Origin: Macrostomum lignano
Taxonomy: Eukaryota
Reading direction: 5' to 3'
NCBI GenBank assembly: GCA_002269645.1
Contig: NIVC01000221.1
Coordinates: 248,001-312,000 of the forward strand
Length of the DNA: 64,000 nucleotides
Shown here: positions 4,371-30,326 of the stretch, in pieces
Position numbering within the stretch: the first letter of the stretch is position 1
Layout of the letters: each line of letters opens with the position of its first letter
Notes under the pieces: model-generated
Databases searched by the model: none
Seen by the model: the letters and a program-made list of their open reading frames with translations, nothing else
Told to the model about the DNA's origin: nothing
Position numbers and translations under genes: made by a program

Positions 4371-4480
4371 GCATACTTTGCTTTCTCTGCTCGACCCTCG
4401 ACTCTATGGGACCGCTCTTTGAGCCATAGATAACAGCATTAAAAGGGACAAATGAAGCAATATAAGTTACAGTTGGAAAT

Positions 4481-5070: not shown

Positions 5071-5906
5071 ATGCTGAAACTCTGCGCTCTGCTGCTCTGC
5101 TGGGCAGTCGGTTCCGGACGCTGCGCCGCTGCTGCGGAGCCGCCTCAACCGTTGGAGTTTCGCCACCTCGGCTGCTACGTGGATGGCGCTGTTGGCAACC
5201 GAGATCTTGTAGGACTGCAGGGGGTCAAAAAGTTCGGACAGTTTGAGACTCACCCTACTAACCCAGCTTTCGCTTTTGACTTCGCCAAGATGACACTGCA
5301 ACTTTGCAGCCAGATGTGCTCTTACGGCCGATTTCGCTACTTTGGAGTTCAGTCTGCGGCCTTCTGCTGCTGCGGCTCGGCCTACGGATCGCACGGCACC
5401 GCGCCGGCTAGCGACTGCAGCAGAGCTTGCAGTGGAGCCCTGTCTCAGATTTGCGGTGGAGAGTCGAGAAATTCGATCTACGAGTTGACTTATTCACCAA
5501 GTAAGCGTTGCGAATTAAAGCAGCTCGTAGAAGTGTAAAGATAGTCTCACTTAGCCAGACGACGTAAAACGCTGCAGATGTTCTAAAGTCGTCCTTAAAT
5601 GTAGTTCGGACTGGGCCATTTCAAATATCAAAACAATTTTTTGTAACCAACCCTTCTGCAGTCGATCCAATGATGCCGAAACTGCCCGTGACGTCTCTGC
5701 CGAACATCACAGCCTCCGCGAGCTCAGTCACCCACAGCAGCGTCTCTGCCAAGAGTGCCATCCAGTGCGCTGCCGCCTGCCAGCGAAGCCCGGACTGTCA
5801 GGACTGCGCCTTCGTGCCTTCGAGCCGCATGTGTCGCCTGCTGAGATTCGCCGCTGTGCCCGCTGAGGTGGCCAGCGAGGCTGATTGGGTCTGGATGAAG
5901 CAGTGA
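5071..5906 (+). CDS. WSC-PAN secreted protein, subtype B copy 1 (B1), 224 aa
   Basis: Exons 5071-5500 and 5662-5906 (phase-1 intron GTAAGC...CTGCAG, 675 nt in frame). Signal peptide MLKLCALLLCWAVG; WSC motifs LGCYVD, MTLQLCSQMC, FGVQ..FCCCG, CSRACSG..QICGG; PAN-like CAAACQRSPDCQDCAF..MCRL. Confidence 0.88.
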
Positions 5907-6240
5907 GGCTGAGTGGGTCTGGATGAAGCTGTGAGGCTGAGTGGGTCTGGATAAAGCTGTGAGGCTGAGTAGGTCTGGATGAAGCAGTGAGGCTGAGTGG
6001 GTCTGGATGAAGCTGTGAGGCTGAGTGGGTCTAAATGAAGCTGTGAGGCTGAGTGGGTCTGGATGAAGCTGTGAGGCTGAGTGGGTCTGGATGAAGCAGT
6101 GACTGAGTGGGTCTGGATTAAGCTGTGAGGCTGAGTGGATTTGGATGAAGCAGTGAGCTGAGTGGGTCTGGATGAAGCTGTGAGGCTGAGTGGTTCTGGA
6201 TGAAGCTGTGAGGCTGAGTGGGTCTGGTTGGAGCTGCGAG
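5877..6240 (+). repeat. 28-bp minisatellite, ~13 units, overlapping the B1 C-terminus and stop
   Basis: Unit GAGGCTGAGTGGGTCTGGATGAAGCTGT; the first unit encodes EADWVWMKQ and its stop spans the unit junction (T|GA). Confidence 0.95.
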
Positions 6241-7053
6241 TCTGTTCGATTTAATGGCAAACACTGATAGGAGTTCTGAATGATAATCCTGACGTACTTT
6301 TAAAAACAAAAGTGATTCATGTATTGGTTCTGTTTCATGTCTTATTATTTATAAAACTATCTAGAATAACAAATGCTATTAAAAGTTTTAAGAGCTTTAA
6401 ATCTTTTATTTTCTCTTAATTGTCCATTGGCAGAACTGTTGTATACGGTATATAAACATATGTTGTGTTATGTGTATTTATAAGCTTTAAATTTTTGGAT
6501 ATTAGTTTACCGTCTATTAAACTAAAACTCCATGGCTAGACTACATGTATATTTTATTCTACGCTTTTCACGTCTTAGGCTATCATTTATAAAGCTATCT
6601 AGAATGACAATTTCAAATCCGAGTTTCGAAGTGTCAAGGTTAAAGAGTTTTAAGTTTTTTCTTTTTGCATTGTTTAGCTACTGTAAAAATTAATGTTTAT
6701 GGTAAAAACTTTAAAATTTTCTGGATACATTACTACTTTACTGTTGTACCATTACGAGTTGTAAGAACTCCATGACTAGTTGACAGTTGGAAAATCATTT
6801 GCAGCCGTACGGCATTTTAACGTTAAATTTTTAAACAAAATTTCAATTCGAGCTAAACGAAGCTCAATTTGGACAATCTAGTGGAGTTCGGTTTTTGCGG
6901 CACTTCAGTTGAAACAAATTCTCTTTCTTACAGGCTAAGTTTTCCGAATTGGAAAATGTTTTCCGACAGTCTATGGCCGAAACCGCTTTTGAGTGGCGAC
7001 TGCGCTCTGATTAAAGCTTCAAGGAAACAGATCAGAGTCACTTTCAGGAGCCA

Positions 7054-7144
7054 GAGAGCGAGAGAAAGAGAGAGAGAGAGGGAGAGAGAGAGAGACAGAG
7101 GGGGGGGGGAGACAGAGAGGGGGAGAGAAAGAGAAAGAGAGAGA
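7054..7144. repeat. (AG)n microsatellite
   Basis: GAGAGA run interrupted by G tracts; related tract at ~31928-31978. Confidence 0.9.
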
Positions 7145-8012
7145 GGTTTCGGTGCCGATCGATGGAAGCGAGCGCTAGTCAGCATCAGAGGCTCAACTAC
7201 CATTGTGATTCTCACTACACCACCTCTCCTGAGTATCCTTGGCGCTATCCACATTGCAGAGTAGACAGTAGAGTGGCAGATTCTTCACTGAGCATAAAAC
7301 AGGAAAATTTCTAAAGCCTATTACGAGCTAATTCTAGGCGTTTGCAAAAATCGAGAAGAAGCTCAAGCCGTCACGGGTGAAATCAACAGCAGGAACGCAG
7401 AAGCAGCCGCTGCAAAAAAACAGCGCTGCACGACATGTCCCCAGCTTTTTCTAAAAAACCCACGCATCATAGAAAAGCTTCAATTTTTCTCAGAATGCAA
7501 AATTCTTCCCAGATGAGTCAGGTACATTAGTGTTAATGAGAAAAGACAAGTTAAACTTACTGTAGTTTTACTACTAAAAATAGCTCATTCAGTGTCCCAC
7601 CGGTTGCGCATTCAACAAGAAAGTACAAGCCGCCAATACACTTTGCTTTAAACTATACGACGTAGAAGACCCATCGATTCATTAAGCAATCACCGATCAC
7701 TGAGCACCGAGAAACAACACTTGAAATGGTTTACCAAACAGGCATCATCACTTTAGCGACGTCTGCACCCTGCCTGCGTCGCTGGCAGTGTTGGTTGAAT
7801 AACTTCTACTACTTTGTTGGAACGCGCTCTGTAATTGGTAGATATTTCATTATATAGTACTTTAGCGCGACGGACATCCAAACAGAGTGAATGCCTCCAC
7901 CATATACTAAAAACGGTCTGTCGGTATCTAGGTAGGTAGAAAGATATGTGATCGATTAGTGATAAAAATGGCTCAACCAATTTTCTCGGAGTTTGATCGA
8001 ATAACTTGAATC

Positions 8013-8212
8013 GCACTTGATAAGCCAAGGATTATTGCACTTGATAAGCCAAAGATTATTGCACTTGATAAGCCAAAGATTATTGCACTTGATAAGCCAA
8101 GGATTACTGCACTTGATAAGCCAAGGATTATTGCACTTGATAAGCCAAGGATTGTTGCATTTGATAAGCCAAGGATTATTGCACTTGATAAGCCAAGGAT
8201 TATTGCATTTGA
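8013..8212. repeat. 24-bp tandem repeat, ~8 copies
   Basis: Unit GCACTTGATAAGCCAAGGATTATT. Confidence 0.95.
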
Positions 8213-8225
8213 CTTCAGATGCCAC

Positions 8226-8590
8226 ATGTTGAAAGACAATGGCTATCTACTGGCGCTGTAGCACAGCTGGCAGTTTCTTAAAATTCTACTTCGATTGAAG
8301 CACCGCTCGCTTCCGATACACGCCTTAGTTCCGAGAAGTCGCTACACTGGACGCCTCGCTGACAGCAAGGAAAAACAGCGATAGAGACCTGCAAGGACTC
8401 GAATGTGTCACGGCGTTTCGCCGGTACACAGTTGACCGCCTTCGTCAAGAGCACGAAAATAACACTGCAGAGGTGTAGCGGTTTCATGCTCGGTTCTGCT
8501 TTTTTGGTGTTCAGGCGGTCGACGAGGGAGAATATGCGGCCCGTGCAGTGACATCTGCAATGGCGCTAACTGGATCATTTCCATCTTGTA
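8226..8590 (+). pseudogene. Highly decayed WSC exon-1 relic
   Basis: With stops and frameshifts it reads SRYTGRLADS, DRDLQGLECV, AFVKSTKITLQRCS and RFCFFGVQA, matching family motifs FRYIGCFVDS, NRDLVGLQGV, FLVRDSSMTLQMCS and RFRYFGVQS in the same order. Confidence 0.55.
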
Positions 8591-8613
8591 AATCACCATT
8601 TGATAGTTAAAAA

Positions 8614-9268
8614 TCCTCAATTTTGAACGAAGTCGAGTTAAATTCGAACCAAAATAGACTTGAATTGAGACATTTCAGTGGAATGTGTTTCTTTGAGGAA
8701 ATTCAATCAATTTAAACGAACTACTTTTCTATTGGCTGAGTTGTCTGAATTGGAAAATCTGTTGAGACAGTCTATGGCCAAAATCGCTTTTAAGAGGCCT
8801 CGGCAGCTCACTAATGCGAACTGATTTTTAGACAATGAGCGGGACGTGTGTCCTGCCAACTGTCTCTACAAGCCATCCTCTTCACCAGCCTCTTCCTTGA
8901 TTTCATTTTCTCCGACAATCTCAGTGTCAAGGCAAATCCTGTCCGCCTCATCTTTATCCGCACTCATGACGATGGCATTTGGATTTCTATCCAATTCGAT
9001 GAGTTAAACAGGCGGTTGGAGTCGCACAATACGAGTATTCCGTCGATTCTGCTTCATTTGAACTTCAATTCAGCGAGCTGTCGCCCCTGAAAAGCGGTTT
9101 TAGCCATAGACTGTGGCAATAAATTTTCCAATTCAGAAAATGTAGTCATTAAAAAAGGGAGTAGCTTATTTGAATTGAATTCCCGTAATAATCAAAATAC
9201 ACTGGATAGGAACTCGATTGAAGTTGTTGTAGTTTGAATTGAACTCGATTTTGTTTAAAATTGAGGGT
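8614..9268. mobile_element. MITE/foldback element with ~190-bp imperfect terminal inverted repeats
   Basis: Left CCTCAATTTTGAACGAAGTCGAGTT...AGTCTATGGCC (8615-8800) mirrors right GCCATAGACTG...AACTCGATTTTGTTTAAAATTGAGG (9085-9268). Partial relatives at ~6840-6995 and ~26470-26790. Confidence 0.6.
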
Positions 9269-9432
9269 AAAATGATGTAATACTCTTATAGTATGGGTAT
9301 TATTTTTTCTATTCATACAAATAATCCATGTGTTTTAGTGATTTACGACTAACATTTATTCAGAGCAAATGGCGTTTTTATTGATACGGCCTAATGATGC
9401 CTAATGACGCATCGCATGATTTGCTTTTAAAT

Positions 9433-9815
9433 CGCGGATCGGCAAACCCCGCCCCACGCGCAACATGCGGCCCGCGCAGCCTCTCTATTCGGCCCTCCGG
9501 TCCTTTAAAACTTCACAACGGCAATCCGGCCCTTATGTGGCTAGTCAACTCTTTATCCCCTCTTCTTTCCCTTCTCTCCCCTCCTCTTTTCTCCTCTTCT
9601 CCTCTTTCCCCTTTCTCTCCCCTCTGTCGGCTTCTCACATTTTCCCTCTCTCCGCTTCTTTCCCCTCTTTCCCTCCTCTCCCGTCTTTCCCCTCCTCTTG
9701 TATTTCCCCTCTTCACTACCTTCTCTTTCTTATCTCTTCTGTCATCCCATCTCTCGACTCTCATCTCTTGTCTCATCTCTCATTTTCCATTCCTCTCCTC
9801 TTCCAGTTATTCAAC
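9433..9815 (+). mobile_element. hAT-Charlie-like MITE remnant with internal CT-rich tract
   Basis: GGATCGGCAAAC...CATGCGGCCCG 5' end followed by a CT-rich tract; right TIR missing; paralogue of 27000-27465. Confidence 0.5.
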
Positions 9816-10140
9816 AATAACTGACTGGTGAATTTTCTCATAAAAGCCTAGACGAAAACGTTTTCACGGCTCAAACGTATTGTCCCCACTCCCTTGTAAT
9901 TCTAGTTGCTAGGGCGAATGTCATCTTTTGGCCCGACATCCTACTCATGCTGCTTGACGAGCGCACAACCCTTGAGGTCAACTCTTTTCACAGCTGCTGT
10001 TGAACTTGTAAATCAAACACGTTCTACCCCGATAATTGGCATCGCAGAGTTTAATTTCACCAAAATACGACTGACGTGATATATTTGCGTTAGAATGTTG
10101 TTCTGAACTGTGAGATTAGTCTGGAGTTCTAGCCTAGTGA

Positions 10141-10500
10141 GGGGGTTGTAGCCTTAGTGGCTAAATTGTCAGACTCACGACAGAAAGGTCGGTAGTTCGA
10201 TTCTCGGCCCGCTCAGAAAAATCTGTGTCCTTGAGCAAGACACTTAATTCTACATTGCTTCAGTTCACCCAGCGGTAAAATGGGTGCCAGCATTAGCTGG
10301 GGTAAATGAGGGTGTGTATGGTGACCCCCCAGTCCTTGGACTGAACAGCCGTACGCAGCCTTCAAATGCGCCGCGCAATAGCTGCGGTTGAGCTGTCGGT
10401 TGCACATCTGGCCATTAAAGCGGGTTTAATTAATTATTAATATTATTGTTATTATTATGACTATTACTACTTATTACTATTATAATAATTATTATTATTA
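10141..10500 (+). mobile_element. tRNA-derived SINE (family 1) with Deu/Nin-like central domain
   Basis: A-box-like TAGCCTTAGTGG, B-box-like GTTCGATTC, central GTGTCCTTGAGCAAGACAC...AAATGGGTGCC and (TTA)n tail. The domain name is from memory of SINE superfamilies. Confidence 0.7.
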
Positions 10501-11265
10501 GGTGGCAGTAACTTAAGTCGTTGTTTCGGTTGCCGTTTGAGTAGTTCCTGCTATAAGCTGAACAGATAATTTTATGTGTAAGAATAGCATAGAATAGAAT
10601 AGAATAGAATAGTAAGAATAGAATAAGAATACGGATGCAACAATTACAACACACTGCACCTTGCTAGCTATCAAAGAATGATGCCTGCTACCCCACCTTT
10701 TGTCCTGACGCGCGCACGCTTAACAGACATGAGACACTCAATTCTTGAGGAAATCTTATGAAAAACAACTGCTGTTGAACTTGTAAATGAAGCGAAATTC
10801 AACCTCTTATCTACACAACACGGAGAAACTGATGCGAAGGCAGTTAAGCCGACCAGTTAAGAAAATAACATCATTTCCTTTTTTGTCTACTTACAAGTAG
10901 CGGTTATAAAAGTTTTAGAATGAAGTCCAAATAGGAGTATTATTTTGTTAGACTTTAGATTAAATACATGTACGAAGTATTTAGCTTTGTGTGGCCTTGC
11001 GCTTCAGTAGCGACTCCAAAGGATACATGAAGCTCGATCTTCAGAATCGAGAAACTGGTAATCTGCTTGCAGCCTTGTCGGGGTTGCTGTCAATTCTGCT
11101 AAAAATGCTGGTTTGTACTCTAAAGATGAACGGCGACTGTGTCCATAAAATTTGACTGCTAGAAGCATTTGACACTGATCAAGTACATGTAAATTACCAT
11201 GCTTTAAAAGCTTGCACGCATATAAATATTATGATACTTAAGTGGCTTGATCTGCGATTGCAATG

Positions 11266-11465
11266 CCACCAACACTCTGTAACACCCCGAGTTGAGAGTG
11301 GCGTGTCTAACAGGCACCAACACTCTGTAACACCCCGAGTTGAGAGGTGGCGTGTCTAACAGGCACCAACACTCTGTAACACCCCGAGTTGAGAGTGGCG
11401 TGTCTAACAGGCGCCAACACTCTGTAACACCCCGAGTTGAGAGTGGCGTATCTAACAGACACCAA
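11266..11465. repeat. 48-bp tandem repeat, ~4 copies
   Basis: Unit CACCAACACTCTGTAACACCCCGAGTTGAGAGTGGCGTGTCTAACAGG; the paralogous site ~28850-28950 has only ~2 diverged units. Confidence 0.9.
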
Positions 11466-12491
11466 CACCCTGGACACACCCCCGACTTGGGCGTATACTT
11501 GGCATCAACACAATGCCATCATAAGCAACACAGGAATATTCTGCCAGGTGGTACACTTAAATGATTCGAGGCTCAAATCCGACAACTCACAAGCGTCTGA
11601 GCGAGGAGCTGCATCGACTGCTCAGCGAGGCGGAATCCATACGAACTGTTGAACTTCCAGAACAAGCAAGAACTTCAGACTGGGTTTGAAGGTTCTGCTT
11701 TCTCTGCGACTCTCACGCATGATTTTCAACCCTAATATAAGCCAGCATATTTTGCAACACTACACAGCACACGAATGGTAGTACGAGTATAGATTAAAAT
11801 ACACTTACATTTATATTAAATATAGTTAGTTGTACACCTCGGGTGGCTTTAAAAATGAGTGTTAATAATTATAATTACTTTCTTCACTGATATTCCTTGT
11901 GGCGATCTTTAAATAAGGTAATTCCTTGTTGCGAATGGATTCCGGGTTTGAATGTATTTTTGAAAAACGATCCAAACTTGCATCGATGAAAATTATCCAA
12001 ACTCAAGATCATTTTTTTCGGCAAAAAATATAAAATCCAGTATAATTTTTGCAGAAAAATTGCTCGATAAATTATAAAAGCACAAATTTGCCTTATTTCG
12101 AATGCATTAGTCAGAACAAGGACATGTAAGATGTCGTGAAATTTGTGCTTAAAACGAGAATTTCCTATCTGACAAATGCATGTTGAAAACCGCCGTGAAA
12201 ACCGCGGCCTTTGAGCAGTAAAAAGCACCGTGAGACTAACTTGTCTGGCAGCGTCCACAACTCTTTTTTAGTGGTCCATGAGGGCAACACGGGCTTACAA
12301 GAGAGCCAGATGCAGCTGATTTCTCACTGGCTCAGGCCCCTAGAAACCAGACAGACATTCTCGAGTCGAGAAGACTCCAGATGCTGTTGCAATCAAAACA
12401 TAAGCCATACAGACAGGGTTCACAGCACAGAGCTAGAATATTCTGAAGAGTCAAAACTTCAAACACTGACCGCAAAGACCAGAGGCATCAA

Positions 12492-13480
12492 ATGTCTTCA
12501 AAAAGCTTTTCTGTCGGTTACTTGCTGATGTGGGCGGCGTTCGGAAGCTGCTTGACTTCTGTGCCGCCTCATCCGACGGCATTCCGCTACATCGGTTGCT
12601 ACGGGGCCTCCGCGGACCCCGACATGGCAGGTCTCGTTGGAGTCGCTACGCTCGGTCCGTATTCGACCTTTTCAGAAAAACCATTTCTTGTACGAGACTC
12701 TTCGATGACGCTGCAGATGTGCAGCCAGATCTGTGCTTATGGGAGATTTCGATACTTCGGTACGAGGTACCGTGCATACTGCTGCTGTGGCAACAGCTAC
12801 GGCTCGTTCGGTCCCGCCCCGGAGAGTGACTGCTCGCATAATTGCTACGGAAACTCATCCCAAATCTGCGGTGGAATTCAGAGGAACTCCGTCTACGAAA
12901 AAATTTATAATCATGGTGAGAGCATTATTCTGAACTTTTCTGAAGCGGATTTGGTTTCTTCTTGCCATGACGGGGAACAATAAGTTATAACGTCAAAAAC
13001 TGTCACCACGAAGCTAGATACCAGTGACAACTTAACCAATTCTCTAACTAACTAAAATTAACTAACTCAAATTAACTAACTCATTTTCTTTTTAAAACTC
13101 TGCTGCGAACACACTCTTGGATAATACAGACTGAATAATTCACAGAGATTTGCCCATATAAATACACTCCAAATATAGTATTTTTAGTTTTGAGGAAATT
13201 TTTTTCTAAATTCTGTTGTAACGCATCTTTTGTAGCTGGCCAAGCAGTGACCAAGCTGCCAGCTTCTGCCATGCCGAGCATCTCAGCTTCACTGAGCTCC
13301 ATCACCCACAGCAGCGTCTCTGCCAAGAGCGCCGTCCAGTGCGCTGCCGCCTGCCAGCGAAGCCCGGACTGTCAGGACTGCGCCTTCGTGCCTTCGAGCC
13401 GCATGTGTCGCCTGCTGAGATTCGCCGCTGTGCCTGCTGAGGTGGCCAGCGAGACTGAGTGGGTCTGGATGAGGCTGTGA
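12492..13480 (+). CDS. WSC-PAN secreted protein, subtype C copy 1 (C1), 222 aa
   Basis: Exons 12492-12915 and 13236-13480 (GTGAGA...TTGTAG, phase 1, 669 nt). Hydrophobic leader, WSC Cys pattern intact (but GCYGA instead of GCFVD), PAN-like exon 2. Confidence 0.87.
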
Positions 13481-13856
13481 GGCTGAGTAGGTCTGGATGA
13501 AGCTGTGAGGCTGAGTGGGTCTGGATGAAGCTGTGAGGCTGAGTGGGTCTGGATGAAGCTGTGAGGCTGAGTAGGTCTGGATGAAGCTGTGAGGCTGAGT
13601 AGGTCTGGATGAAGCTGTGAGGCTGAGTGGGTCTGGATGAAGCTATGAGGCTGAGTAGGTCTGGATGAAGCTATGAGGCTGATTATGTCTGGATGAAGTT
13701 ATGAGGCTGAGTAGGTCTGGATGAAGCTGAGGCTGATTATGTCTGGATGAAGTTATGAGGCTGAGTAGGTCTGGATGAAGCTGTGAGGCCGAGTGGTTCT
13801 GGATGAAGCTGTGAGGCTGAGTGGGTCTGGATGAAGCTATGAGGCTGAGCTGGTCT
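13451..13856 (+). repeat. 28-bp minisatellite, ~14-15 units, overlapping the C1 stop
   Basis: Same unit as 5877-6240, with variants GAGTAGG, GATTATG and AAGCTAT. Confidence 0.95.
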
Positions 13857-14482
13857 GCACTGGCAAGCACTGAGAATAATTCTGAGTAATAATCGTAGCA
13901 GGCTAACAAAAATACACGAGAATCATATTTTGGCAGTGCTTTGAGTGTTTATGAGTGTTTCTAATATCAACTGCAAATCTGAAACTTTAAGCCAGGGTCT
14001 CTTAATTTATTGAGTCGACAAATTGAGAGCCGTTCTGAGACACCTGGACCCAGACAGTGTTGAGTTGACGGGTGTTCATCAGACGCCAATGCAGGACGAA
14101 ACGACAGGCCAGATCCAGTGATTGTGCAGCTTCGAGCGCAGTTGAAGAGAGCCACGGGCCCGATGTGTCAATTGATGACAGCCCGATGGTGATTGTATCT
14201 CAGGAATTTGTTCAAAAGCAGTCTGGTGAAAGAGAGAGAAAGAAAAGATAATTGTTTAGGTTCCGATGGAGGGAAGCGAGCTCTTGTCAGCATAAGAGGC
14301 TCAAGTACAAATTTTGTGGTTCTCAAGAAATTAAATATATATTTCCTTACTATTTGTGAATGACTGTTTATTTATTTCCAGAAGCCTGGTAGATTCAAAT
14401 TTGGATTTTCTTTGATTCTTTTTGCCCTTCTGCCGCGCGCCTCTGACTGTTAGTTCTCACGTTTACTTGGCACCATAGTTAA

Positions 14483-17224: not shown

Positions 17225-18370
17225 TTAATATAAACTGTTAATAGCAGGACTGCAGAACAAACTAAACAAGGAAGATATTATTCAGTGCTTTAAACGTTAA
17301 AAAGACCTCAACAGCAATCCCGAAGTTGTTGCCACTGAATACGCAAAACACATCCCAGACAATGAAAAGTGGCAAAGCATTAAAGTTTTCACTTACGGAG
17401 ATCCAAAGATTGATCCTAAAACTAAAATCTTACCACAACCCGATGAACTAGAAAAGGGAGAAAGCACCCGATTGTCTTTAATGACTGCAGGACTGATCCT
17501 CAAAAAAAATCGAAACTTATTTTGCCCGAGTTAGGGACAATCATTGCAGCGTTACAAGCCTATCAGTTTGTCATGATTAGCAAGAAAAAAAGAATTTTAA
17601 TTTAATTTTTCATCATTAAAACTTTTTAGTAAATTGCGCAGGCGAGTCTGTAAGGTTTGACGAAAATGAAGAGCAATTTAAAAGCGGTGGTTCGTTTGGT
17701 TTTTATTGGCATATTAGGGAGGAAGTAAGGAAATGGGAAAAAGTGAAGAGTTGGCGATGCGCCTGCCGTATTTTTTATAGATATGATTTTCTTTTTCCGA
17801 AAAGTTCTAAAAATATTTCTTACAATATAACAAATCTAAAGTGCAGATAAATTACACTTACATATCTTAAAATGGACGCTAAAAATTCTCTTTATGATTC
17901 GAAAGCTGCTGCAGCTCCTCCCAAAGCACCTCCCACAACACCTAGTGAACCTCAACATGAGCAACAGAAACTTTACCCTGTCCTTGCTTGTAACTCTCAA
18001 CAATTCCGATTGGTTAAGATTAAAAAATGCGAGATAACATTGAAAATAATATTAGGCACAAGCACAACACAAAAACCTTAAACGTTACAATAGACACTTC
18101 AGATATTTTGAGTACAGCAATATTGCTTTGCGTCCGTTCTAAAAGGTTCTGCAGCTGCCGCCTCAGTGTTGCTGGCCACCACAATCCCAATTGCCATCCC
18201 ACTTGGCTCCTTTGGATGCTGTATGTATGCGGTCTTATTTCAGCAATTACTGGAGCGCTGACGCGTCACCGGCGAAAGAAACTTAAAAAACTACAGGAGA
18301 AGCAAATAAATGAGAAAGGGCTCACCTCGACGGCTATGAGGAAAGCTAAATTTCTCCTTGATGTTGTCAT
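17225..18370 (+). mobile_element. Decayed coding fragments, possibly Polinton/Maverick-derived
   Basis: Broken ORF at ~17230-17480 and frameshifted ORF pair 17872-18081 / 18027-18407 with LYPVL..QQFRLVKI, a hydrophobic central segment and a basic K-rich tail. The resemblance to a Polinton small ORF is from memory only. Confidence 0.3.
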
Positions 18371-21031
18371 ACTACAGACAGCTGGAAATACAGATATCAG
18401 AAGATAACGTAAGAGACCCAGAGCTGTGACTGAAATTTTGGACAGCAGTAAAATCAGCGAAATCTAGTTGAGAGCGTATGTGTTGAGGACTAACTTGTTT
18501 TGTGAGGAGTGAACCAACTACTAGTGAAAATGTCTACTCAGCAAGATGAAAAAGTCACCGCTCTATGCGCCAGTGAGCAATTTCTCTTTGGCTATTCTAA
18601 AAAAGAAGATGCGAAAAAACTGATCCAGGTTATAAAATGATTTTCGCAGGTAAAAAAATCATTCAGTCAATACTATGAATGTCTGAGTTAGCAACTATTG
18701 AAGTTCAGGAAACTGGGAGGCTAGACATCTGACTGGTGACAGGGAATTTACGGAAACCGGAAGCAACCTGCGAGATACTCTCATCTGTAGCAGATTCGCT
18801 GCTGAGCAGAAAAACTGTAGCAATTCCCTGAAGCCTCTTGTGAGCGCATGCAAAAAGCCGAGAAGAAATTCAAGCCGTCTCCGGGCGAATCCACCAGCAG
18901 GAAGGTGAAAACAGGCTGGAAAAACAAAGCTGTGAGACAAATGCTCCCAGATTTCTCTAAAAACTCGCTGCTAAAGAAGCAAGTCAAGAGCAATGAGTGG
19001 GCGAGGCGAGACGAAAAGTGCCAAGTGCACTGACAAACAACGTGATGATTAATTGTAAGCAAGGTCCAATTGCAGTCACTGCAAACCCAAGGGCAAAAGC
19101 GCCATCAGATCAGAGACGTGCAAGGAGCGCGAGAAATAGACACTAAGCACATGAACGGAGTTCAAATCGCGAACAATAAATACTACATGGATTAACCCCA
19201 CACACGACACCCAACACTCGCGAGTTTGAGACAAGTTTCTAAATGTATTTTGGAATGCAATATTCACCTCGAATGAGTCAGATAAAGTAGTGTGGTTCAG
19301 AAAAGACAGGTTAGTCTTTCGTTGGTTTTTACTGCTCAAACCAGCTTATCCAGTGTTGCCAGTGTTTTATTTCGATTGGCTCAATACAGAGGACCTTCAA
19401 AACCTGCACAGCAGGAAACGATGTTGACTGTATTACTTGCAAGTTCTAACGATCTGGATTTCCATTATTTTCCTTTTCCACCCCTTTCTGTCTGCAAAAT
19501 ATCGGTAGCCTTTTGTTGTCGCTCATACATCGCTTATACACCTAGTGGCTCTGACCAAGAAAGTGCCAAGAAATATAAAATTTAATTGTCAGAGAATAGG
19601 CCATGAAATAGTTTGTTTTCATAACCTCGCCATTTTGTCATTGTCCTTGATTACCATCAGACTAGACGCATCTCCAAGAGTCCAAAGCTGTTTTCTTGAC
19701 TTCGTGTCAGGCAGTAAAGAAGACGCTCATGCCCCAGTCGACTTTTTTTCTCTTGATCGCTGGTGCGCTCGTCAACATCCCTCAATCGATCGCTTTATCC
19801 GTCATCATCTTGAATCAGTCTCCTCCAAGCTCATCCAATAGAATCTGTTCCACCTCATGAGAAGATAATGGTCAGCTTGTTCAAGTTGTTCCACTCTAAA
19901 TGCAAGAGACTGGTCCAGAGGACTGTCTTCCATTTTCAATTCAATGGTGATAAATTCGTGTGTGTCCAAAATTTTGCGTGAGACTGCATGGTAATCTGTA
20001 GTCTAAAAAGAGGCTACGAAATTCGGCTGCTCGGAGCATTTGACTCCACATCGATCAAGTACGTGAAAAGTACAATGCCTTACAAGCTTGCATGTGTATA
20101 AAAGTTTTGATACTTTAGTGGCTTGCTCTGCGCTTTTTATGCCAGCGGGCACCAACAAACTAAAATCCTGATTTAGGTGTATCTTTGGCATCGACACACT
20201 GCCATCCTAAACAGTAGTAATGTCAGGCGACTCACTGATAGACAGGCGCCTGAGCAAGGAGCTGCATCGACTGCTCAGCGAGGCAAAATTCAATCGATAA
20301 TATTAACCTTCTAGCATAGAATGGGTGTGGAGGTTCTGCCTTCTCTGTGACTCTCCGCCTCGCTTCACACTGCTCCCAGAGTTCACACATGGCTCTGTTC
20401 CCATTTCGTCTATTGAAGCTTCTCTCCTCTCAACTGTACATGGAAGAACCTGGGAGACGAGGAGCGCAGGCTTTGGGCTAGTGCTAGGCTGCAGCGAGAC
20501 ATTGTCGACTTACAGTTTACAGCAGTTTACTACACTTTAACAGTTACATGTTAGATAGTAAACCAGAGATACCACTAAAACATGTACTTCAACTTTAAAA
20601 CCCTCAGTTGCTCTCGGTGCCAATAAGGTTGTATTCTTTACTATTGCAAAATATATACTAGCATATGCATGCAAAGTAATCACGGAAGCTATTCGCTTAT
20701 AACTTGAACGGGATTCAGGGCTGAGAGCAAAATAAAAAAATGCTTTTTTAACATACGATCTCTTTGATCTCGGCCTGGCTCTTTTGCCCAGCGTCGTTGA
20801 CAGGTGATTCCGTTCTTTGCTGCCTGTTTGAAAGCTCGTGTATCGAGCTTTTTGGTTACTTAGAGTTCAAACGCACAGTTTGTACTTAAAGTAGCATATC
20901 AGTTATCTACACGGATCTTAGCTCAAAGTGCAGTGATACATGTAGATCTGCAAATAACCAATCAGAGTAGCCCAATGCAAAACTATATGAAGCTTTGCAG
21001 AAGAAAGCGGCCCGGATATACAACTTTAAAC

Positions 21032-21764
21032 ATGTTCTACAGACAGTCAATCGTTCTGGTCGCTGTGTGCACCTTCTGGGTCCTCGCCGCTGGCAGGGTG
21101 ATCCAGTTCTCTTACGTTGGCTGTTTTCAAGACGAAGGAAGCAACAGAGACTTGAACGGATTTGCGGATGTCACAAACGTTGGTGGGTACGGAAACACTG
21201 TATATTCGGCCATCCGTAACAGCGGGATGACCCACGAAATGTGCGGTAGCATTTGCTCGTTGGGCGGATTCCTGTTTTTCGGGGTGCAGCACCAACGGTA
21301 CTGCTACTGCGGCTCATCCTATGGCTCAGTCGGATCAGTCGCTGACAGCCTCTGCAACACTGCGTGCTCTGGAAACTCCAGTCAAAAGTGTGGAGGCAGT
21401 TACAAAAACTCTGTTTTCGCTTTGACCTACCCGAGTGAGTGTTAATACTAAAAGTGCAAACTGTTAGCGACCAATGAATCAAAGCGGGCATATTCCCTGA
21501 ATTCTCTGATTTGATTTCGCACTTTCAGCTAGCAAATGTTTTCAACAGACTGATAGGCCAACCCTGACAGTGACTGCCTCGCGACGGATCCACTGGACCC
21601 GCCCTGCCGGAATCGATGTCACCTGCGTGATGCTGTGTGAAGCCTCAGCCGACTGCCAGGCTGTGATTTTCTCTGGCCAGCAGCGCCTGTGCCACCTGCT
21701 GAGGTTCGCCTATCCGCCTGCCAACCTGAGCAGCATCGATGGGGTGTACTTTGTTCGCGGCTGA
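21032..21764 (+). CDS. WSC-PAN secreted protein, subtype A copy 2 (A2), 212 aa
   Basis: Exons 21032-21434 and 21529-21764 (94-nt GTGAGT...TTTCAG intron, 639 nt in frame). Leader MFYRQSIVLVAVCTFWVLAAG, full WSC Cys set, exon 2 CVMLCEASADCQAVIF..LCHL. Confidence 0.9.
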
Positions 21765-22509
21765 GACTTGAAATGAGAAGATCGATTTATTTAGTAGAAG
21801 ATAAGACGCAAATTAAAATCCTACAAATTTGCATGCTTCGATAATGATTTTCACAATCAAACCTATATTTTTCTCAACAAAGCAAACTTAGCAACAGCTA
21901 ATCCCCCTATTAACTCACGCTGGAACACGGCTTAAGAGTTTTGCATGCCATCGGGGTAAACCAATGGTAAAGCCATCAAGCATGTCTGGGACTTAGTAAT
22001 GCGAAGATGTCAGTAGGGTGTCCAGCAGAATGCTGAACAGATTTGCGTCTGCCGGTTCTGAATGCCTGGCAGCAGTTGTCTCAAGCGTTCATCAACGGGC
22101 TGGTGAATCAGCTGATACCACGACGAGTAACGGCACTTTAGCGTGCTCGTGCATGGTTCCTGGATACGCTACAGAAACTGGAATTAAAGATACTGCCACG
22201 TGACAGCGTCAATTTTGGGGGCGGGCGATTAGCTGTTTCTGAGTGTGTTAAACCGACAGCTAAAAATTGTTAAATTTTTGTTTCCTATAAGTCCTGAACT
22301 TGTTGTTTTCCATGTTCAACTGGTCTTAGAAATATTTTCTGATACGATCCGTATCTTTGAGAGGTTCTTCTCAGAAATACACGTGTTTCTTTCTACGCTT
22401 ATTAGCTTTCTGCTGTGGGCACTACATATTCTTTTATTCTAACAGGCTTGCAATAGAGGCTTAGCTACAATTGTGATTCACACTATCAGCTGTAAACACC
22501 ATTCTGAAG

Positions 22510-22970
22510 AAATTCACCATTTCGGCTGCCTTCACGTGCTTGACGTCGTGAATTATACCTTGCTGATGACGTCTGTTCCTCTCTCCGCTGTCTCCAAGAG
22601 GACCGCGATCTTTTGGATGCTGCTCAGAGAGTCGTCTGGAGCGGGCGTCTTTGAATCTGTGAATTACGGAGTCCAGTCACCAGCTTGTCCCTCAGTGCTT
22701 CATCCAGGAATATATTTTCTCAGTTGTTCCAGATAATTGCTGATGCTCTCGCCCTCGTGCTGACTGCGCCGGTAGAAATTGAACCTTCCTCACCACCTTT
22801 CAAAGCTTGGGGTTAAAGTGCTCCCGGAGAGTCTTGATGATGTCAAGAGGTCTCCTTCGGCTTCTTTGGGGCCAACAGATCTCGCAACATCGTCACCATT
22901 GTAACGTTCGAGGTCCCGGCAGGTCTAATTTAAAGAGCCGCTGCTGCGAGCACATTATGGATACTTTGCT
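22510..22970 (-). mobile_element. gag: Degenerate Gypsy gag fragment (duplicate of 3770-4370)
   Basis: Colinear with ~3920-4370 at high identity. Confidence 0.65.
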
Positions 22971-23149
22971 CCCGGCCGAGTCTTGCTTCCTCTGCTCGAC
23001 TCTAGACTCTGTGGGACCGCTCATGCACATCAAGGTGAGACCTCAGCCAATCCATGCACAGCATTGGTGGTCCATTTTACCATTGGCTTCTTCTAGCAAA
23101 TATAGTGCTTAACTTTTTTACCTGAATCAGAAGAAGCGTCTCAGAAACT

Positions 23150-23447
23150 GCCGTTCGGTTCCGGATGCTGCGTTGCTGCTGCAGTGCCGCCTCAACCGTT
23201 GGAGTTTCGCCACCTCGGCTGCTACGTGGATGGCGCTGTTGGCAACCGAGATCTTGCAGGACTGGAGGGAGTCAAAAAGTTCGGACAGTTTGAGACTCAC
23301 GCTGGTATCCCAGCATTCGGTTTCGACTTCGCCAAGATGACACTGCAACTGTGCAGCCAGATGTGCTCTTACGGCCGATTTCGCTACTTTGGAGTTCAGT
23401 CTGCGGCCTACTGCTGCTGCGGCTCGGCCTACGGATCGGATCGCACG
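23150..23447 (+). pseudogene. Subtype B fragment (B2): no start codon or signal peptide, truncated at the microsatellite
   Basis: Versus B1, a 64-nt deletion (equivalent to 5048-5111, TCGG microhomology) removes the ATG and leader; a GGATC duplication follows, then the exon is cut at 23447. Confidence 0.88.
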
Positions 23448-24551
<1,104 letters not shown>

Positions 24552-24790
24552 TGAACTTTTTGAAGACAGTATCAGAAATTTTTCAGATATATTCTTGTCT
24601 TGCTACTCATCAGTGGTCGATATCTTTTTCCTATTAGGGTGAAACCTCAGCCAATCCTAGCTCAGCATTGGTGGTCAATTCTCCATTGGCTTCTTCCAGC
24701 AAATATACTACCTACCTAAATTTCTTACCAGAACCAGAAGAAGGGTCCTCAGAAACTGTAGTTCGGCCACTCTCTAGTTTTTTTTTCCCA

Positions 24791-25672
24791 ATGCTGAAAC
24801 TCTGCGCTCTGCTGCTCTGCTGGGCAGCCGGTTCCGGACGCTTCGCCGCTGTTTCCGTGCCGCCTCAACCGTTGGAGTTTCGCCACCTCGGCTGCTACGT
24901 GGATGGCGCTGATGGCAACCGAGATCTTGTAGGACTGGAGGGAGTCAAAAAGTTCGGACAGTTTGAGACTCACCCTGGTTTCCCAGCATTTGTCTACGAT
25001 GGCGCCAAGATGACACTGCAACTGTGCAGCCACATGTGCTCTTACGGCCGATTTCGCTACTTTGGAGTTCAGCTCCACAGCTTCTGCTGCTGCGGCTCGG
25101 CCTACGGATCGCACGGCATCGCACCGGCTGGCGACTGCAGCAGAGCTTGCAGCGGGAACTCGTCTCAAATTTGCGGTGGAGCTTACAGAAATTCTATCTA
25201 CGAATTGACTTACTCACCAAGTAAGCGTTCCGGATTAACGCAGCTTGTACAAGTGTAAACACAGGTTGCGTAAATTTAGCGAAGGACGACCTAAAAACAC
25301 TGAACTCTTTTTTCATTAAAATCAGTTCTCATTGGGAGATTTTACAAGCAATATTCGAATTGATTTGACCGATAAAAATATTAACAATAATATTGGCATG
25401 CCATATTTTCAACCAACCCTTCTGCAGTCAATCCGGTGATGCCGAAACTGCCCGTGACGTCTCTGCTGAACATCACAGCCTCCGCGAGCTCCATCACTCA
25501 CCGCAGCATTGCAGCCAGCAGTGCAGTTGAATGCGCCACCATCTGCTACGGCAGCCCGGACTGTCAGGGCTGCGCCTTCGTGCCTTCGAGCCGCATGTGC
25601 CGCCTGCTGAGATTCGCCGCTGTGGCCGCTGAGGTGGCCAGCGAGGCCGAGTGGGTCTGGATGAAGCTGTGA
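24791..25672 (+). CDS. WSC-PAN secreted protein, subtype B copy 3 (B3), 224 aa
   Basis: Exons 24791-25220 and 25428-25672 (GTAAGC...CTGCAG, 675 nt in frame); all WSC and PAN Cys present. Confidence 0.88.
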
Positions 25673-25871
25673 GGCTGAGTGGGTCTGGATGAAGCTGTGA
25701 GGCTGAGTGGGTCTGGATGAAGCTGTGAGGCTGAGTGGGTCTGGATGAAGCTGTGAGGCTGAGTGGGTCTGGATGAAGCTGTGAGGCTGAGTGGGTCTGG
25801 ATGAAGCTGTGAGGCTGAGTGGGTCTGGATGAAGCTGTGAGACTGAGTAGGACTGGATGAAGCTGTGAGAC
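25643..25871 (+). repeat. 28-bp minisatellite, ~8 units, overlapping the B3 stop
   Basis: Nearly perfect GAGGCTGAGTGGGTCTGGATGAAGCTGT units. Confidence 0.95.
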
Positions 25872-26999
25872 TGTTCGAACTAATAGCAAACACTGAAAAG
25901 AATTCCGAGTAAGTAATTATCGTGGCGAACCTATACCAAAAATACACGAGAATCAGATTTTGGCTGCGCGTTATGTCTTATTGTTTATGTAGCTACCTGA
26001 AATAACAACTGCAAATACAAAGTTTCAAGTGTCTTTTTTCTACGAATTTTTCCCTTTTATTTTAATATTTAGCCTGATATCCGACATGAACCACAGACAG
26101 GTATTTGACGACTTGAGTTAGGGTGCATTCTGCATAACGACGTAAATGATGGTCCAGTGAAGCGAAGCAAGAAGGAATATAAAACTGTATCTTGGAGTTG
26201 GTGCAGTGTCGGTAGAAGTTTTTTTGGAATATCTAGCTGAGGTCCTCTTAGCCTTTCGCAAGCTAAAATCAATTTGTAGTTTGCAAGTGACTGTAGCCCC
26301 AAACTTTTCACCTGGAATGAAATACATAATCTCTTCTTTAGCCATTCGGAATTCCAAAAGATGAGGTAAATGGAAATCAGTATAGAAAAACACAAAGCTT
26401 CCGATGTCTCTGATGCATATTGCAGCGAAATACAGGCCTCAAGGGACTGTGTTCTGCTACTGTTTCTCCACAAGCCATCCTCTTCACCAGCCTCTTCCTT
26501 GATTTCATTTTCTCCGACTATTTCAGTTTCAAGACATATCCTGCCGGCCTCATCTTCATGCGCACTCATGGCGATGGCTGTTAGATCTCTATCGAATTCG
26601 ATGAGTTCGATTGATGAGCCGGTTGGAGTCACACAATACTCTATCGACTCTGTTTCTGTTGAACTTCAATTCAGCGGGCTGTCGCCATTGAAAGGTTTTG
26701 GCCATAGACTGTTGGAATGAATTTTCCAATTCAGACACTGTAAGCCTATAGAAAGCAGGTAGTTTGTTTAAATTGAATTATCGTGGGAATGACAATCCAC
26801 TACATTGGAACTTTGTAGTGCTTTTATAGTGTGAGTATTTTTTTGTATTCATCCCAATAATGCATCTGTTTTAGTGACTCACGACTCAGTAACATTTATT
26901 CAGAGCAAACGACTCAGTAACATTTATTCAGAGCAAATGATGTATTTATTGCTTAATGCCTTAAGCCTGCATCTCATGATTTTCTTTTACGAGCTAGAT

Positions 27000-27465
27000 C
27001 ACGGGTTGGCAAAACAAGGCTCGCCGGCCACATGCGGCCCGCGAAGCCTGTTTTATTCGACCCTCGGGTCCTTTAAAACTTCACAACAGCAATCCGGGCC
27101 TCTCAATACTTATGTCGCTTCTCAACTCCTTATCTCCTCTTCTTTCCCCTCTCTTCTCTCCTCTCTCTTCTCTCCCCTCTCTTCTTTCCCCTCTCCTCTC
27201 CTCTCTTTCCCTTCCTCTCCACTCTTTCCCCTCAACTCCTCTTTCCTCTTCCCCTCTCTTCCCTCTTTCCCCTCCGTTCCCCTCTTTCCCTCCTCTCCCC
27301 TTTTCACTTCCTTCTCTTTCTTATCTCTTCTTTCATCCCATCTCTCGACTCTCCTCTCTTCTCTTATCTCTCATTTTTTTCTCTCTCCTCTCCACTCTCA
27401 TCTGGCCCGCAATCATGAGCTGGATTGTTTATCTAGCCCTTGATGAAAAAGTTTGCCGACCCCTG
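27000..27465 (+). mobile_element. hAT-Charlie-like MITE with CT-rich core
   Basis: TIRs CACGGGTTGGCAAA / TTTGCCGACCCCTG, subterminal GGCCACATGCGGCCCG; left flank AGCTAGAT resembles the Charlie target, but the right flank does not duplicate it. Confidence 0.65.
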
Positions 27466-27787
27466 TAACTGACTCGTGAATTTTCTCATAAAAAGCCTCG
27501 AAGAAAATTGTCACGGCTTAAACGCATTGTCCCCACTCCTTTGTAATTCCAGTTGCTAGGGCGAATGCCACCTTTTTGCCCGACGTCCTACTCACTTATG
27601 CTGCTTGACGAGCGCACAGAACTTGATGTCAACTCTTCTCAGAGCTGCTGTTGAACTTGTAAATCAAACACGTTCCACCCCGAGAATTGGCATCGTAAAG
27701 TTTAGTTTCACAAAAGATATAACTGACGCGTTATATTTGCGTTATATTGTCGCTCTAAACTGTGGGATTAGTGTGACGTTCAAGCCT

Positions 27788-28115
27788 AGGTGGTTGTAGC
27801 CAAATGGCTTGATTGTCAGACTCACGACTGAAAGCTTGGGAGTTCGATTCTCGACCCGCTCGGAACAATTTGTGTCCTTGAGCAAGACAATTAAATCTGC
27901 ATTGCTTCAGTTCACCCAGCTGTAAAATGGGTGCCAGCATTAGCTGGGGTAATTTAGTGGTGACCACAGAATATACTGTGGTGGTGACACCCCAGTCCTT
28001 GGACTGAACAGCCGTACGCAGCCTTCAGATGCGCCGCGCAATTGCTGCGGCTGAGCTGTCGGTTGCACGTACATCTGCTCATTAGAGCGGGTGTAATTAA
28101 TGATTACTATTATCA
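27788..28115 (+). mobile_element. SINE family 1 (duplicated copy of 10141)
   Basis: Same body and same flanks as 10141-10500. Confidence 0.7.
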
Positions 28116-29385
28116 TTTTTATTAAGTACGAGTAACGTGTCTCATCTTGGTCGTCGTTTGAGTAATTCCTGCTATAAGCTAAACACAATTTCATGTATAG
28201 CGATAACACACTCATACGGATGCAACAGTTACAACTCTCTGCATCGCTGACTATCCGAAAATAATGCTTGCTACGTCACCTTTCGTCCTGACCTACTCAC
28301 GTGTGACAGACACTCAACTCTTGAGGGAATCTCTTGAGAAACTACTGCTGTTTAACTTGTAAATCAACCGAAATCCAATCCTCTTATCTACACAACACTG
28401 ATAAACTGATGCGAAGGCGTTTAAGCCGATCCGTTAAGAAAATCACATCATTTGCTTTTTTGCCTACTGAAAAGTAGCGGTATAAAAATTTCGGCATAAT
28501 GCCAAAATCAGAGTATCATTTTTTCACACTTTAAATTAAATATTTAGTCTCGTGTGGCCTAGCGCTTTAGTAGCGAGTCCTAAGGATACATGAAGCTCGA
28601 TCTTCTGAATCGAGACACTGCATGGTAATCTGTTTGCAGCTTTGTGGGGGATGCTGTCACAATTCTGTCGAAAATTCTCATTTGTACTCTAAGGAAAATG
28701 GCGAATTTGTCTGTAAAATTTGACTGTCAGAAGCATTTGACTCCCACCGATCAAGTACGAGTAAATTACCATGCTTTACAAGCTTGCATGGATATAAATG
28801 TTATGGTACTTACGAGCTATGTGGCTTGATTTGTGATTGCGGTGTCAGAGGGCAGCAACACCCTGTATCACCTGATTTGGGAGTGGCATGTCTAACCGAC
28901 ATCAACACAGATTTAAGAGTTGCATGTCTAACAGACACCAACACCCTCTTATTCCCCGACTTAGGCGTATCTTTGGTATCAACACACGGTCATCATAAGC
29001 AACACAGGAATATTCTGTTAGGTTGTCCACTTAAATAATTCAAGGTTCACATAAAACAGCTCACAAGCGTCTGAGCGAGGAGACTGATCGAGTGCTCAGC
29101 GAGGCGGAATTCAGTTGAACGTCCTTGACTTAACAGCGTCCTTGAATCAATTTTAGTGGTCCATGAGGGCAACACGGGCTTACAAAAGAGCCAAATGCAG
29201 TTGATTTCTCACTGGCTGAGTCCCCAGGTAACCAGACAGCCATTCCCGAGTGGAAAAAACTCCAGAAGCTGTTGCAATCAAAACATAAGCCGGTAGCCAG
29301 ACTAGTTCTTCACAGCACAAAGCTGGAATATTCTGAAACGCCAAAAACTCCAAACACTGACCGTAAAGACCAGCACAAGCTTCAA

Positions 29386-30326
29386 ATGTCTTCAAAAAGC
29401 TCTTCTGTAGGCTACTTGATGATGTGGGCGGCGTTCGGAAGCTGCTTGACTTCGGTACCGCCTCATCCGACGGCATTCCGCTACATCGGTTGCTTCGTGG
29501 ACTCTGCGGACCCCGATATGGCAGGTCTCGTTGGAGTCACTGCACTCGGTCCGCATTCGACCCATTCAGAAAATCCTTTTCTTGTTCGAAACACTTCGAT
29601 GACGCTGCAGCTGTGCAGCCAGATCTGCGCTTATGGGAGATTTCGGTACTTCGGTACGAGGTACCGTGCATACTGCTGCTGCGGCAACAGCTACGGCTCG
29701 TTCGGTCCCGCCCCGGAGAGTGACTGCTCGTATTATTGCTACGGAAACTCATTCCAAATCTGCGGTGGAATTCAGAGGAACTCCGTCTACGAAAATATTT
29801 ATAATCAGGGTAAGAGTGATTTTTCTGAAGCGCTTGTTGTTTTTCTTGCCATAACGAGGCACAGTACGTTCTAACGTCGTTAAAACGTCAACAACTCTCA
29901 CACGAAGCTGGATGCCAGTAACAAATTAACTATTTCTAAGATGTTCTTTTTAAAACTCTGCTGCAAATGCACACTTTTTGAAAATGCCTATTGAATAAGT
30001 CACAGAGATTTGCCCATATAAATGCGCTCCTATTTGTGACGTAGTTTTTTTACTGAATTCTGTTTTAATTCAACTTTGCAGCTGACCAAACAGTGACAAA
30101 GCTGGCAGTTTCTGCCATGCCGAGCATCTCAGCTTCACTGAGCTTCATCACCCACAGCAGCGTCTCTGCCAAGAGCGCCATCCAGTGCGCTGCCGCCTGC
30201 AAGCGAAGCCCGGACTGTCAGGGCTGCGCCTTCGTGCCTTCGAGCCGCATGTGCCGCCTGCTGAGATTCGCCGCTGTGCCCGCTGAGGTGGCCAGCGAAG
30301 CTGAGTGGGTCTGGATGAAGCTGTGA
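29386..30326 (+). CDS. WSC-PAN secreted protein, subtype C copy 2 (C2), 222 aa
   Basis: Exons 29386-29809 and 30082-30326 (GTAAGA...TTGCAG, 669 nt in frame); canonical YIGCFVD. Only ~1.5 units of the 28-bp repeat (30297-30340). Confidence 0.88.

Follow-up and report, generated by a model that had tools for sequence, protein, structure and literature searches.

Partial-gene concerted evolution by interlocus gene conversion is known in tandem duplicates. In the human fetal globin genes HBG1 and HBG2, Slightom, Blechl and Smithies reportedly found in 1980 that a (TG)n simple repeat marks the end of the converted tract, and in the major histocompatibility complex (MHC) of birds and fish the 3′ exons and untranslated region are homogenised within a genome alongside a diverse peptide-binding exon. 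In addition, the human minisatellites MS32 and CEB1, studied by Jeffreys and co-workers in the 1990s, are said to be unstable through polar, flank-initiated conversion, which is allelic and was observed in sperm. Here, we analysed a 64,000-nucleotide (nt) stretch of the Macrostomum lignano genome (contig NIVC01000221.1, positions 248,001 to 312,000; hereafter the window), in which a tblastn scan detected eight members of one gene family: A1, B1, C1, A2, B2, B3, C2 and E. In this family, concerted evolution of the 3′ end of exon 2 is likely to be driven by interlocus gene conversion. In exon 1 and the 5′ third of exon 2, by contrast, each gene diverges on its own.

Gene conversion at this locus is a new example of a well-known textbook process. 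As in HBG1/HBG2, a discrete intragenic tract is homogenised between neighbours and the rest diverges, which is seen as incongruence of adjacent segments, and the tract adjoins a simple tandem repeat to which the start or stop of exchange is attributed. Unlike the globin case, the tract forms the 3′ terminus of the coding sequence (CDS) and is common to deep subtypes (synonymous divergence, dS, >1 in exon 1) and to other contigs, and the repeat, a minisatellite of 28-nt units, begins with a coding unit that comes with the stop codon. Similar to bird and fish MHC, one family combines a variable and a constant part, with conversion in one and diversification in the other; however, the boundary in the window lies within one exon and one domain, and no balancing or positive selection is evident on the variable part, the ratio of nonsynonymous to synonymous divergence (dN/dS) of exon 1 being 0.4-0.5, a value that appears relaxed and at which positive selection is not demonstrable. 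The arrays in turn resemble MS32 and CEB1 in their interspersed variant units and their copy numbers (1.6 to 17.8), in the concentration of variation at the gene-side end and in the fact that similarity is greatest beside the array, but the exchange that we infer here is between paralogs, and a subfamily that has no array behaves alike. What is unusual is that, throughout one tail class, a minisatellite encodes the C-terminus and the stop codon of each member.

Divergent exon 1 and constant exon-2 tail in the B and C genes

Six of the eight members (B1, B3, C1, C2, A2 and E) are intact and consist of two exons separated by a phase-1 GT-AG intron (Table 1); the signal peptide and the WSC domain are encoded by exon 1 and a PAN/Apple-like domain by exon 2. 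Self-comparison of the window revealed that block 1 (~1-14000) and block 2 (~18700-30500) are collinear at ~84% identity and represent a segmental duplication, and the duplicated segment appears to have carried genes A, B and C. Comparison outside the window drew on four contigs of assembly GCA_002269645.1, which supplied the DNA of five M. lignano relatives. Exon 2 was divided into zone 1 (the first 66 nt), zone 2 (the next 60 nt; 5727-5786 in B1) and zone 3 (the last 117 nt, from SPDCQ to the stop codon), the last being referred to as the constant tail.

Between B and C, exon 1 is 58.9-60.1% identical in nucleotides and ~51% in amino acids (aa), with a dS of 1.1-1.5 versus 0.14-0.20 within a subtype (C1-C2 0.14; B1-B3 0.20), and zone 1 is divergent like exon 1 (dS 1.4-1.6). 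In zone 2, B1 differs from C1 and from C2 at 3 of 60 sites each and from B3 at 22 of 60. Zone 3 differs at only 3-7 sites in all six pairs of these genes (dS 0.04-0.12), including the pairs within a subtype (C1-C2 0.12; B1-B3 0.08). Over the last 180 nt of the CDS, 9 differences separate B1 from C1 (95.0% identity), 10 separate B1 from C2 (94.4%) and 9 separate C1 from C2, and B3 is 26-29 differences away from each other gene because another sequence type occupies its middle 60 nt.

The segments are thus incongruent. Exon 1 and zone 1 together (480 nt) contain 147 subtype-diagnostic sites, all of which support (B1,B3)(C1,C2) with no neighbour-grouping site among them, versus none in the last 117 nt (P ~3e-19). 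Taken in order, the 261 polymorphic sites comprise a long subtype run, then B3 singletons, then two neighbour-pattern sites and finally private changes. The significance of matching runs was assessed by a home-made GENECONV-type permutation of polymorphic sites, which gave a run of 14 for B1-C1 (p = 1e-4) and of 9 for B1-C2 (p = 4e-4). These results bear out the initial annotation of this stretch, which had reported a strong difference between B and C in exon 1 together with near identity of the 3′ ~180 nt of exon 2 in B1 and C1, had attributed the latter to non-allelic exchange between subtypes, and had proposed separate comparisons of exon 1, 5′ exon 2 and 3′ exon 2 and a GENECONV-type test: synonymous divergence falls more than 10-fold along the gene, and B1 sides with C1 and C2 in zone 2.

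The same contrast extends to the M. lignano paralogs on other contigs, where comparisons between subtypes of B/C/D-type copies gave a dS of 1.2-2.7 in the exon-1 core and of 0.04-0.33 in the tail. In addition, the G+C content at third codon positions is 0.79-0.87 in the homogenised zones versus 0.60-0.62 in exon 1 (Fisher p 0.002-0.02), a rise that biased gene conversion would produce. The introns are unalignable among B and C copies. Past the array that follows the CDS, ~75 nt are 80-83% identical among B3, C1 and C2, and a weaker sharing of ~75-300 nt of 3′ flank was observed among B, C and D-type paralogs (flank identity 66-83%).

As the shared stretch is short (100-190 nt) and adjoins a repeat array, which is difficult for read mapping and polishing, mixed reads might have made the exon-2 ends alike in silico. 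Such an assembly or polishing artefact is extremely improbable, since every copy has changes of its own in the tail (8 singletons within the 117 nt), the arrays are unequal in length and in their variant units, the longest exact match between B1 and C1 is just 100 nt (5761-5860 in B1), and the same architecture with nearly the same tail was found on the four comparison contigs and in proteins of a different annotation.

Two layers of homogenisation are apparent from these comparisons, an older family-wide 3′ module and one younger patch in B1. The older layer consists of the last ~117 nt of the CDS plus the minisatellite, which are common to B, C and D-type paralogs despite the saturation of their exon 1 by substitutions; one comparison locus (L001) has in common with the window only the tail and the array. 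The constant tail is found throughout the family and, for the most part, equals or exceeds the segmental duplication in age.

The C-type patch in B1 and its donor

In B1, the last B-type diagnostic site is at 5719 and the first C-type site at 5732/5736, and within 5732-5860 B1 differs from C1 at two positions only, 5756 and 5760; the 3′ end of the patch can be placed only within 5835-6244. The corresponding middle zone of B3 (25498-25552) is the ancestral B-type version. A B3-like zone 2 is the B-type norm, being found in five M. lignano proteins (P0001-3, 5 and 6) and in the M. lignano B gene at L004:..4038 (L004 is contig NIVC01003252.1), from which it follows that B1 acquired C-type sequence. 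M. lignano also has the C-type zone 2, on the minus strand at L003:2101 (L003 is contig NIVC01000622.1), and the M. lignano protein P0004 is a second mosaic, with a B3-like exon 1 and a C-type zone 2. Judging from these boundaries and differences, the patch in B1 is ~105-130 nt of C-type sequence, copied in after the duplication and several-fold younger than it.

A single clean 5′ switch point (5719-5732) might also mean that B1 is a chimera formed by unequal crossing-over between a B and a C gene, and the cluster has other signs of unequal exchange, namely the B2 fragment, a solo repeat relic at 4480-4552 and variable array lengths. However, if a crossover had the age of the patch (2 differences in ~129 nt), the B1 flank would be ~98% like that of C1; the 3′ flank of B1 past the array is 68% identical to C1, 71% to B3 and 66-71% to any other copy. 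Moreover, the collinearity of the blocks is kept downstream of B1 (8841-11390 with 26443-28962). A crossover is therefore very improbable, and because its 3′ flank is unlike that of C1, we interpret the C-type segment of B1 as a patch. The 3′ flank was also considered as a marker of neighbourhood and was rejected, as it contains no neighbour-pattern sites and B1 is simply an outlier.

The initial annotation had further proposed that two diagnostic sites group the genes by physical neighbourhood, B1 with C1 and B3 with C2. Both sites are located as claimed in the codon alignment: CAGGACTGC occurs at 5799 in B1 and at 13373 in C1 (and, as an unrelated match, at 17245), and CAGGGCTGC occurs at 25565 in B3 and at 30219 in C2. 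The first site is A at 5803/13377 versus G at 25569/30223 (GAC versus GGC), the second is T at 5834/13408 versus C at 25600/30254 (TGT versus TGC), and no other site among the 657 aligned CDS columns has the B1=C1 versus B3=C2 pattern. GGC and TGC are present in B3, C2 and all five M. lignano tails, and GAC and TGT only in B1 and C1; because all five of those tails carry GGC/TGC, this state is ancestral and GAC/TGT is derived. The grouping by neighbourhood is thus plausible for B1 and C1, which share two derived sites, and unsupported for B3 and C2, which share ancestral states only. No evidence of exchange was found in block 2; both sites lie in one B1-C1 run, which one event explains.

On the basis of the two shared derived sites, the donor of the patch is most probably the neighbour C1, 7.6 kb downstream. 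On the most parsimonious history, two substitutions would have occurred in C1 after the split of C1 and C2, followed by conversion from C1 to B1 and then by private changes. Alternatively, the two sites could be parallel mutations, or the patch could have come from a C-type copy outside the window, in which case neighbourhood would be irrelevant. The neighbour-specific signal consists of two sites only, both of them transitions, and the last 177 nt also contain a subtype-pattern site (5756) and a cross-pattern site (5760) that groups B1 with C2. The neighbour topology has a bootstrap value of 86% for the last 117 nt, which drops to 47% when the last 177 nt are used, B1 is only one site further from the distant C2 than from C1 over the last 180 nt, and P0004, a B/C mosaic with a different exon-1 lineage, implies that such mosaics recur or spread. 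On the other hand, neither site is a CpG, and the probability of two parallel changes was 0.003-0.03 in simulation. The sites are 31 nt apart in the 100-nt perfect B1-C1 run adjoining the C-type zone, and the derived states occur in 0 of 5 M. lignano tails. Parallel mutation or a distant donor is in our view rather unlikely.

Outside the window, the B-type gene at L004:~3920-4038 and a C-like exon 2 at L003:~2220-2101 (minus strand) share a derived GAG CTG (E-L) in the tail, all other copies having GAG GTG, and this may represent another cross-subtype exchange. The C-like copy of L003 has an in-frame stop in its first repeat unit.

The minisatellite and the second homogenised tail

In every B/C/D-type copy, both in the window and on the four M. 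lignano contigs, a minisatellite with a 28-nt unit (GAGGCTGAGTGGGTCTGGATGAAGCTGT) starts inside the last nine codons. Unit 1 encodes the last nine residues (…EAEWVWMKL), the stop codon TGA is at the junction of unit 1 and unit 2, and the C-terminal protein variants (SEAEW/SETEW, KL/KQ) are the same as the unit variants within the arrays. Array lengths in the window are given in Table 1; the array of the M. lignano D gene has 17.8 units. Similarity to C starts at about nt 67 of exon 2 in B1 and at about nt 126 in B3, and in the D gene identity climbs gradually, with the last 60 nt perfect. These nested 5′ ends, together with the variants and the flank similarity, fit tracts that would be anchored at the array.

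In the mechanism that we propose, breaks would form, or replication would slip, within the unstable minisatellite or next to it, repair would use a paralogous template, and tracts would start at the 3′ end and extend 5′ by variable distances. Similarity made by conversion would permit further conversion, and where protein selection permits upstream divergence, homology would be lost and the boundary would become stable. A literature search found no report of gene conversion in this family or of the minisatellite.

The variant-repeat maps of B1 and C1 were considered as evidence of exchange between neighbours and proved uninformative, as the arrays differ and the shared GAGTAGG variant is also present in B3 and in the solo relic at 4480-4552. 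A decayed exon 2 was looked for beside this relic and none was found. The relic lies within a ~350-nt stretch (4418-4768) that is absent from block 2 and may be the scar of a deleted B-type copy.

A parallel case was observed in the A/E subfamily. Exon 1 of A2 and E differs with a dS of 2.3, versus 4 differences in the 111-nt tail (dS 0.12), and the switch occurs at the homologous DCQ codon, the same 5′ boundary as in the B/C/D class. The tail sequences differ between the two subfamilies, and the A/E genes have no minisatellite, their similarity stopping at the stop codon. Even A1, a pseudogene with lesions of +4 nt at ~1073 and -5 nt at ~1098 (both in exon 1) and with a Cys codon lost relative to A2, retains a 111-nt tail near those of A2 and E. 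Both this case and the minisatellite over the stop codon had been missed by the initial annotation. Because the A/E subfamily is homogenised without an array, the minisatellite probably helps homogenisation but is not essential, and the common DCQ boundary suggests that protein-level selection decides where homology, and hence conversion, can persist.

Nucleotide-level selection on the tail, whether for an RNA element, a small-RNA target or codon constraint, might in principle conserve it with no exchange at all. The tail is conserved in every family member, including those on other contigs, two subfamilies have their 5′ tail boundary at the same DCQ codon, and the A/E similarity ends exactly at the stop codon. 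We nevertheless consider constraint improbable. Young paralog pairs have a normal tail dS, which argues for exchange: in young M. lignano A/E-type pairs the mean tail dS is ~0.26 versus ~0.31 in exon 1 (from few sites), and in the window the corresponding values are 0.12 versus 0.14 for C1-C2 and 0.08 versus 0.20 for B1-B3. Furthermore, constraint cannot yield the mosaics B1, with its C-type middle zone, and P0004, and the tail sequences differ between the two subfamilies. RNA-structure constraint in particular was rejected, as the tails show no excess of structure (folding z +1.4 and +0.6), no better than the exon 1 control.

Several points weigh against conversion anchored at the array and continuing to the present. 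The role of the minisatellite is circumstantial, since the A/E tails without an array and C2 with ~1.6 units are both homogenised, and the tail boundary between B3 and C is a step and not a gradient, which weakens the role of the array. The DCQ boundary shared by both subfamilies hints at selection and not tract mechanics. In addition, the tail dS in the window (0.04-0.12) is comparable to or little below the exon 1 dS of the duplication (0.14-0.20), and the exchange that had been called ongoing is therefore supported only for the single patch in B1. Of the earlier claim that exchange followed the duplication, at least one event, the B1 patch, stands, but the constant tail is common to deep paralogs on other contigs.

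"Genome-specific" differences of the A/E tails (AAC/GTG in the window versus AGY/GAC in M. lignano) were considered as a sign of concerted evolution and dropped, since the M. lignano copies form an exon-1 clade and change on its stem branch explains the fixed differences. Gene E is bracketed by two inverted repeat copies (34277-34614 and 39782-40125) that are 94% identical and have a tRNA-like 5′ end; transposon ends were rejected as an explanation, the two being tRNA-derived copies resembling a short interspersed element.

Cluster organisation, protein domains and implications

The coordinates of the family members and their parts are collected in Table 1.

Table 1. Members of the gene family, constant tails, conversion patch and minisatellites in the window (position 1 is the first nucleotide of the window)
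Feature	Position	Strand	Details
A1, A-type paralog pseudogene	833-1551	+	constant tail 1441-1551
Solo minisatellite relic	4480-4552	+	2.6 units; upstream of B1; no exon 2 adjoining
Gene B1	5071-5906	+	exon 1 5071-5500, intron 5501-5661, exon 2 5662-5906; 224 aa; intact
C-type conversion patch in B1 (putative)	5732-5860	+	contains 5803 (GAC) and 5834 (TGT)
B1 constant tail	5787-5906	+	zone 3, SPDCQ to stop
B1 minisatellite	5877-6244	+	13 units
Gene C1	12492-13480	+	exon 1 12492-12915, exon 2 13236-13480; 222 aa; intact
C1 constant tail	13361-13480	+	zone 3
C1 minisatellite	13451-13857	+	14.6 units; rich in GAGTAGG variant
Gene A2	21032-21764	+	exon 1 21032-21434, exon 2 21529-21764; intact; A/E-type constant tail 21654-21764
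B2, exon-1 fragment of B-type gene	23155-23446	+	without start codon and signal peptide
Gene B3	24791-25672	+	exon 1 24791-25220, exon 2 25428-25672; 224 aa; intact
B3 constant tail	25553-25672	+	zone 3
B3 minisatellite	25643-25873	+	8.2 units; 98% uniform
Gene C2	29386-30326	+	exon 1 29386-29809, exon 2 30082-30326; 222 aa; intact
C2 constant tail	30207-30326	+	zone 3
C2 repeat	30297-30341	+	~1.6 units; array collapsed or never expanded
Gene E	37433-38802	+	exon 1 37433-37829, exon 2 38567-38802; intact; tail 38692-38802

The B2 fragment is cut off by a (TATC)n microsatellite at 23449-24549 (~275 units, 1.1 kb, 98% pure), which is unusually long and represents either a true expansion or an assembly problem. 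Outside the window, L003 and L004 carry mixed clusters of A/E-tail and B/C/D-tail members in both orientations, with several near-identical pairs between the two contigs, as expected of duplicated or homeologous regions. The GC content of the window is ~43%. An intact open reading frame (ORF) for a 548-aa piggyBac-type transposase (14777-16423; Pfam DDE_Tnp_1_7 2e-69, with a C-terminal zinc finger) lies just downstream of C1, and fragments of a related piggyBac-type transposase (32495-33199) lie downstream of C2. A young Ty3/gypsy-like long terminal repeat (LTR) retrotransposon occupies 53605-62823, with 777-nt LTRs that are 99.87% identical. It encodes gag at 54628-55689, its pol spans two frames that overlap (56102-58792 and 58777-60189), and these are followed by a 3′ ORF that contains a 39-nt coding repeat (60956-61218). 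In addition, an ORF on the minus strand (47206-47958) resembles a KH/STAR-type RNA-binding protein with an RG-rich tail and is unrelated to the lectin-like cluster.

The family genes match M. lignano proteins only (identity 87-89% for B3 and 62% for E), and the family is Macrostomum-specific, consisting of small secreted two-domain WSC-PAN lectin-like proteins with a hydrophobic N-terminus. Both domains exceed the Pfam gathering scores (WSC 4e-11 to 4e-13, PAN_1 9e-6 to 9e-5; in B1, 4.7e-11 and 3.4e-5). With the AlphaFold (AF2) model of the M. lignano relative P0007, of predicted local distance difference test score 84, Foldseek retrieved Kremen and yeast Wsc1 through their WSC domains (E 1e-6 to 5e-5), and weaker matches were the apple domains of FXI and kallikrein. 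In this predicted structure, WVWMKL forms one β-strand of the PAN fold; the last three strands correspond to the constant tail, and the variable/constant boundary falls directly after the PAN helix. The variable/constant organisation originally described is present in the genes, but its boundary lies inside the PAN domain and not between domains.

Several prostate-limited seminal-fluid candidates of M. lignano are WSC-domain proteins with transcripts of ~0.7-1.1 kb, and the best match of one of them is plasminogen of the oyster, which contains a PAN domain (Weber et al. 2018, PMC5977470, Table S1); WSC-domain candidates are also reported by Patlar et al. 2019 (PMC6953679). The genes of the window are likewise small and secreted, carry WSC and PAN domains and match these candidates in size; the resemblance is at the level of annotation only. 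A seminal-fluid role for the window family is thus a lead on function and not a finding.

The locus offers a clean and quantifiable case of partial concerted evolution, from saturation to near identity within one short exon, with a dated patch on top. For annotation and phylogenetic trees in Macrostomum, the history of these genes cannot be read from their exon-2 sequences, and short reads will map ambiguously to the tail and array. It is also possible, though unlikely, that the 3′ module of three PAN strands, stop codon and minisatellite is a dedicated recombination cassette in which the array would initiate ectopic repair. If so, one protein face would be kept uniform genome-wide and the WSC half and the PAN helix would be free to diversify, which would amount to a genetically enforced constant/variable architecture in a possibly seminal-fluid lectin-like family, with a C-terminus rewritten by repeat turnover. 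The role of the array is testable in M. lignano, for which transgenesis and RNA interference exist. If the family does include seminal-fluid proteins, its conserved and diverging halves would bear on the evolution of reproductive proteins under sexual conflict.

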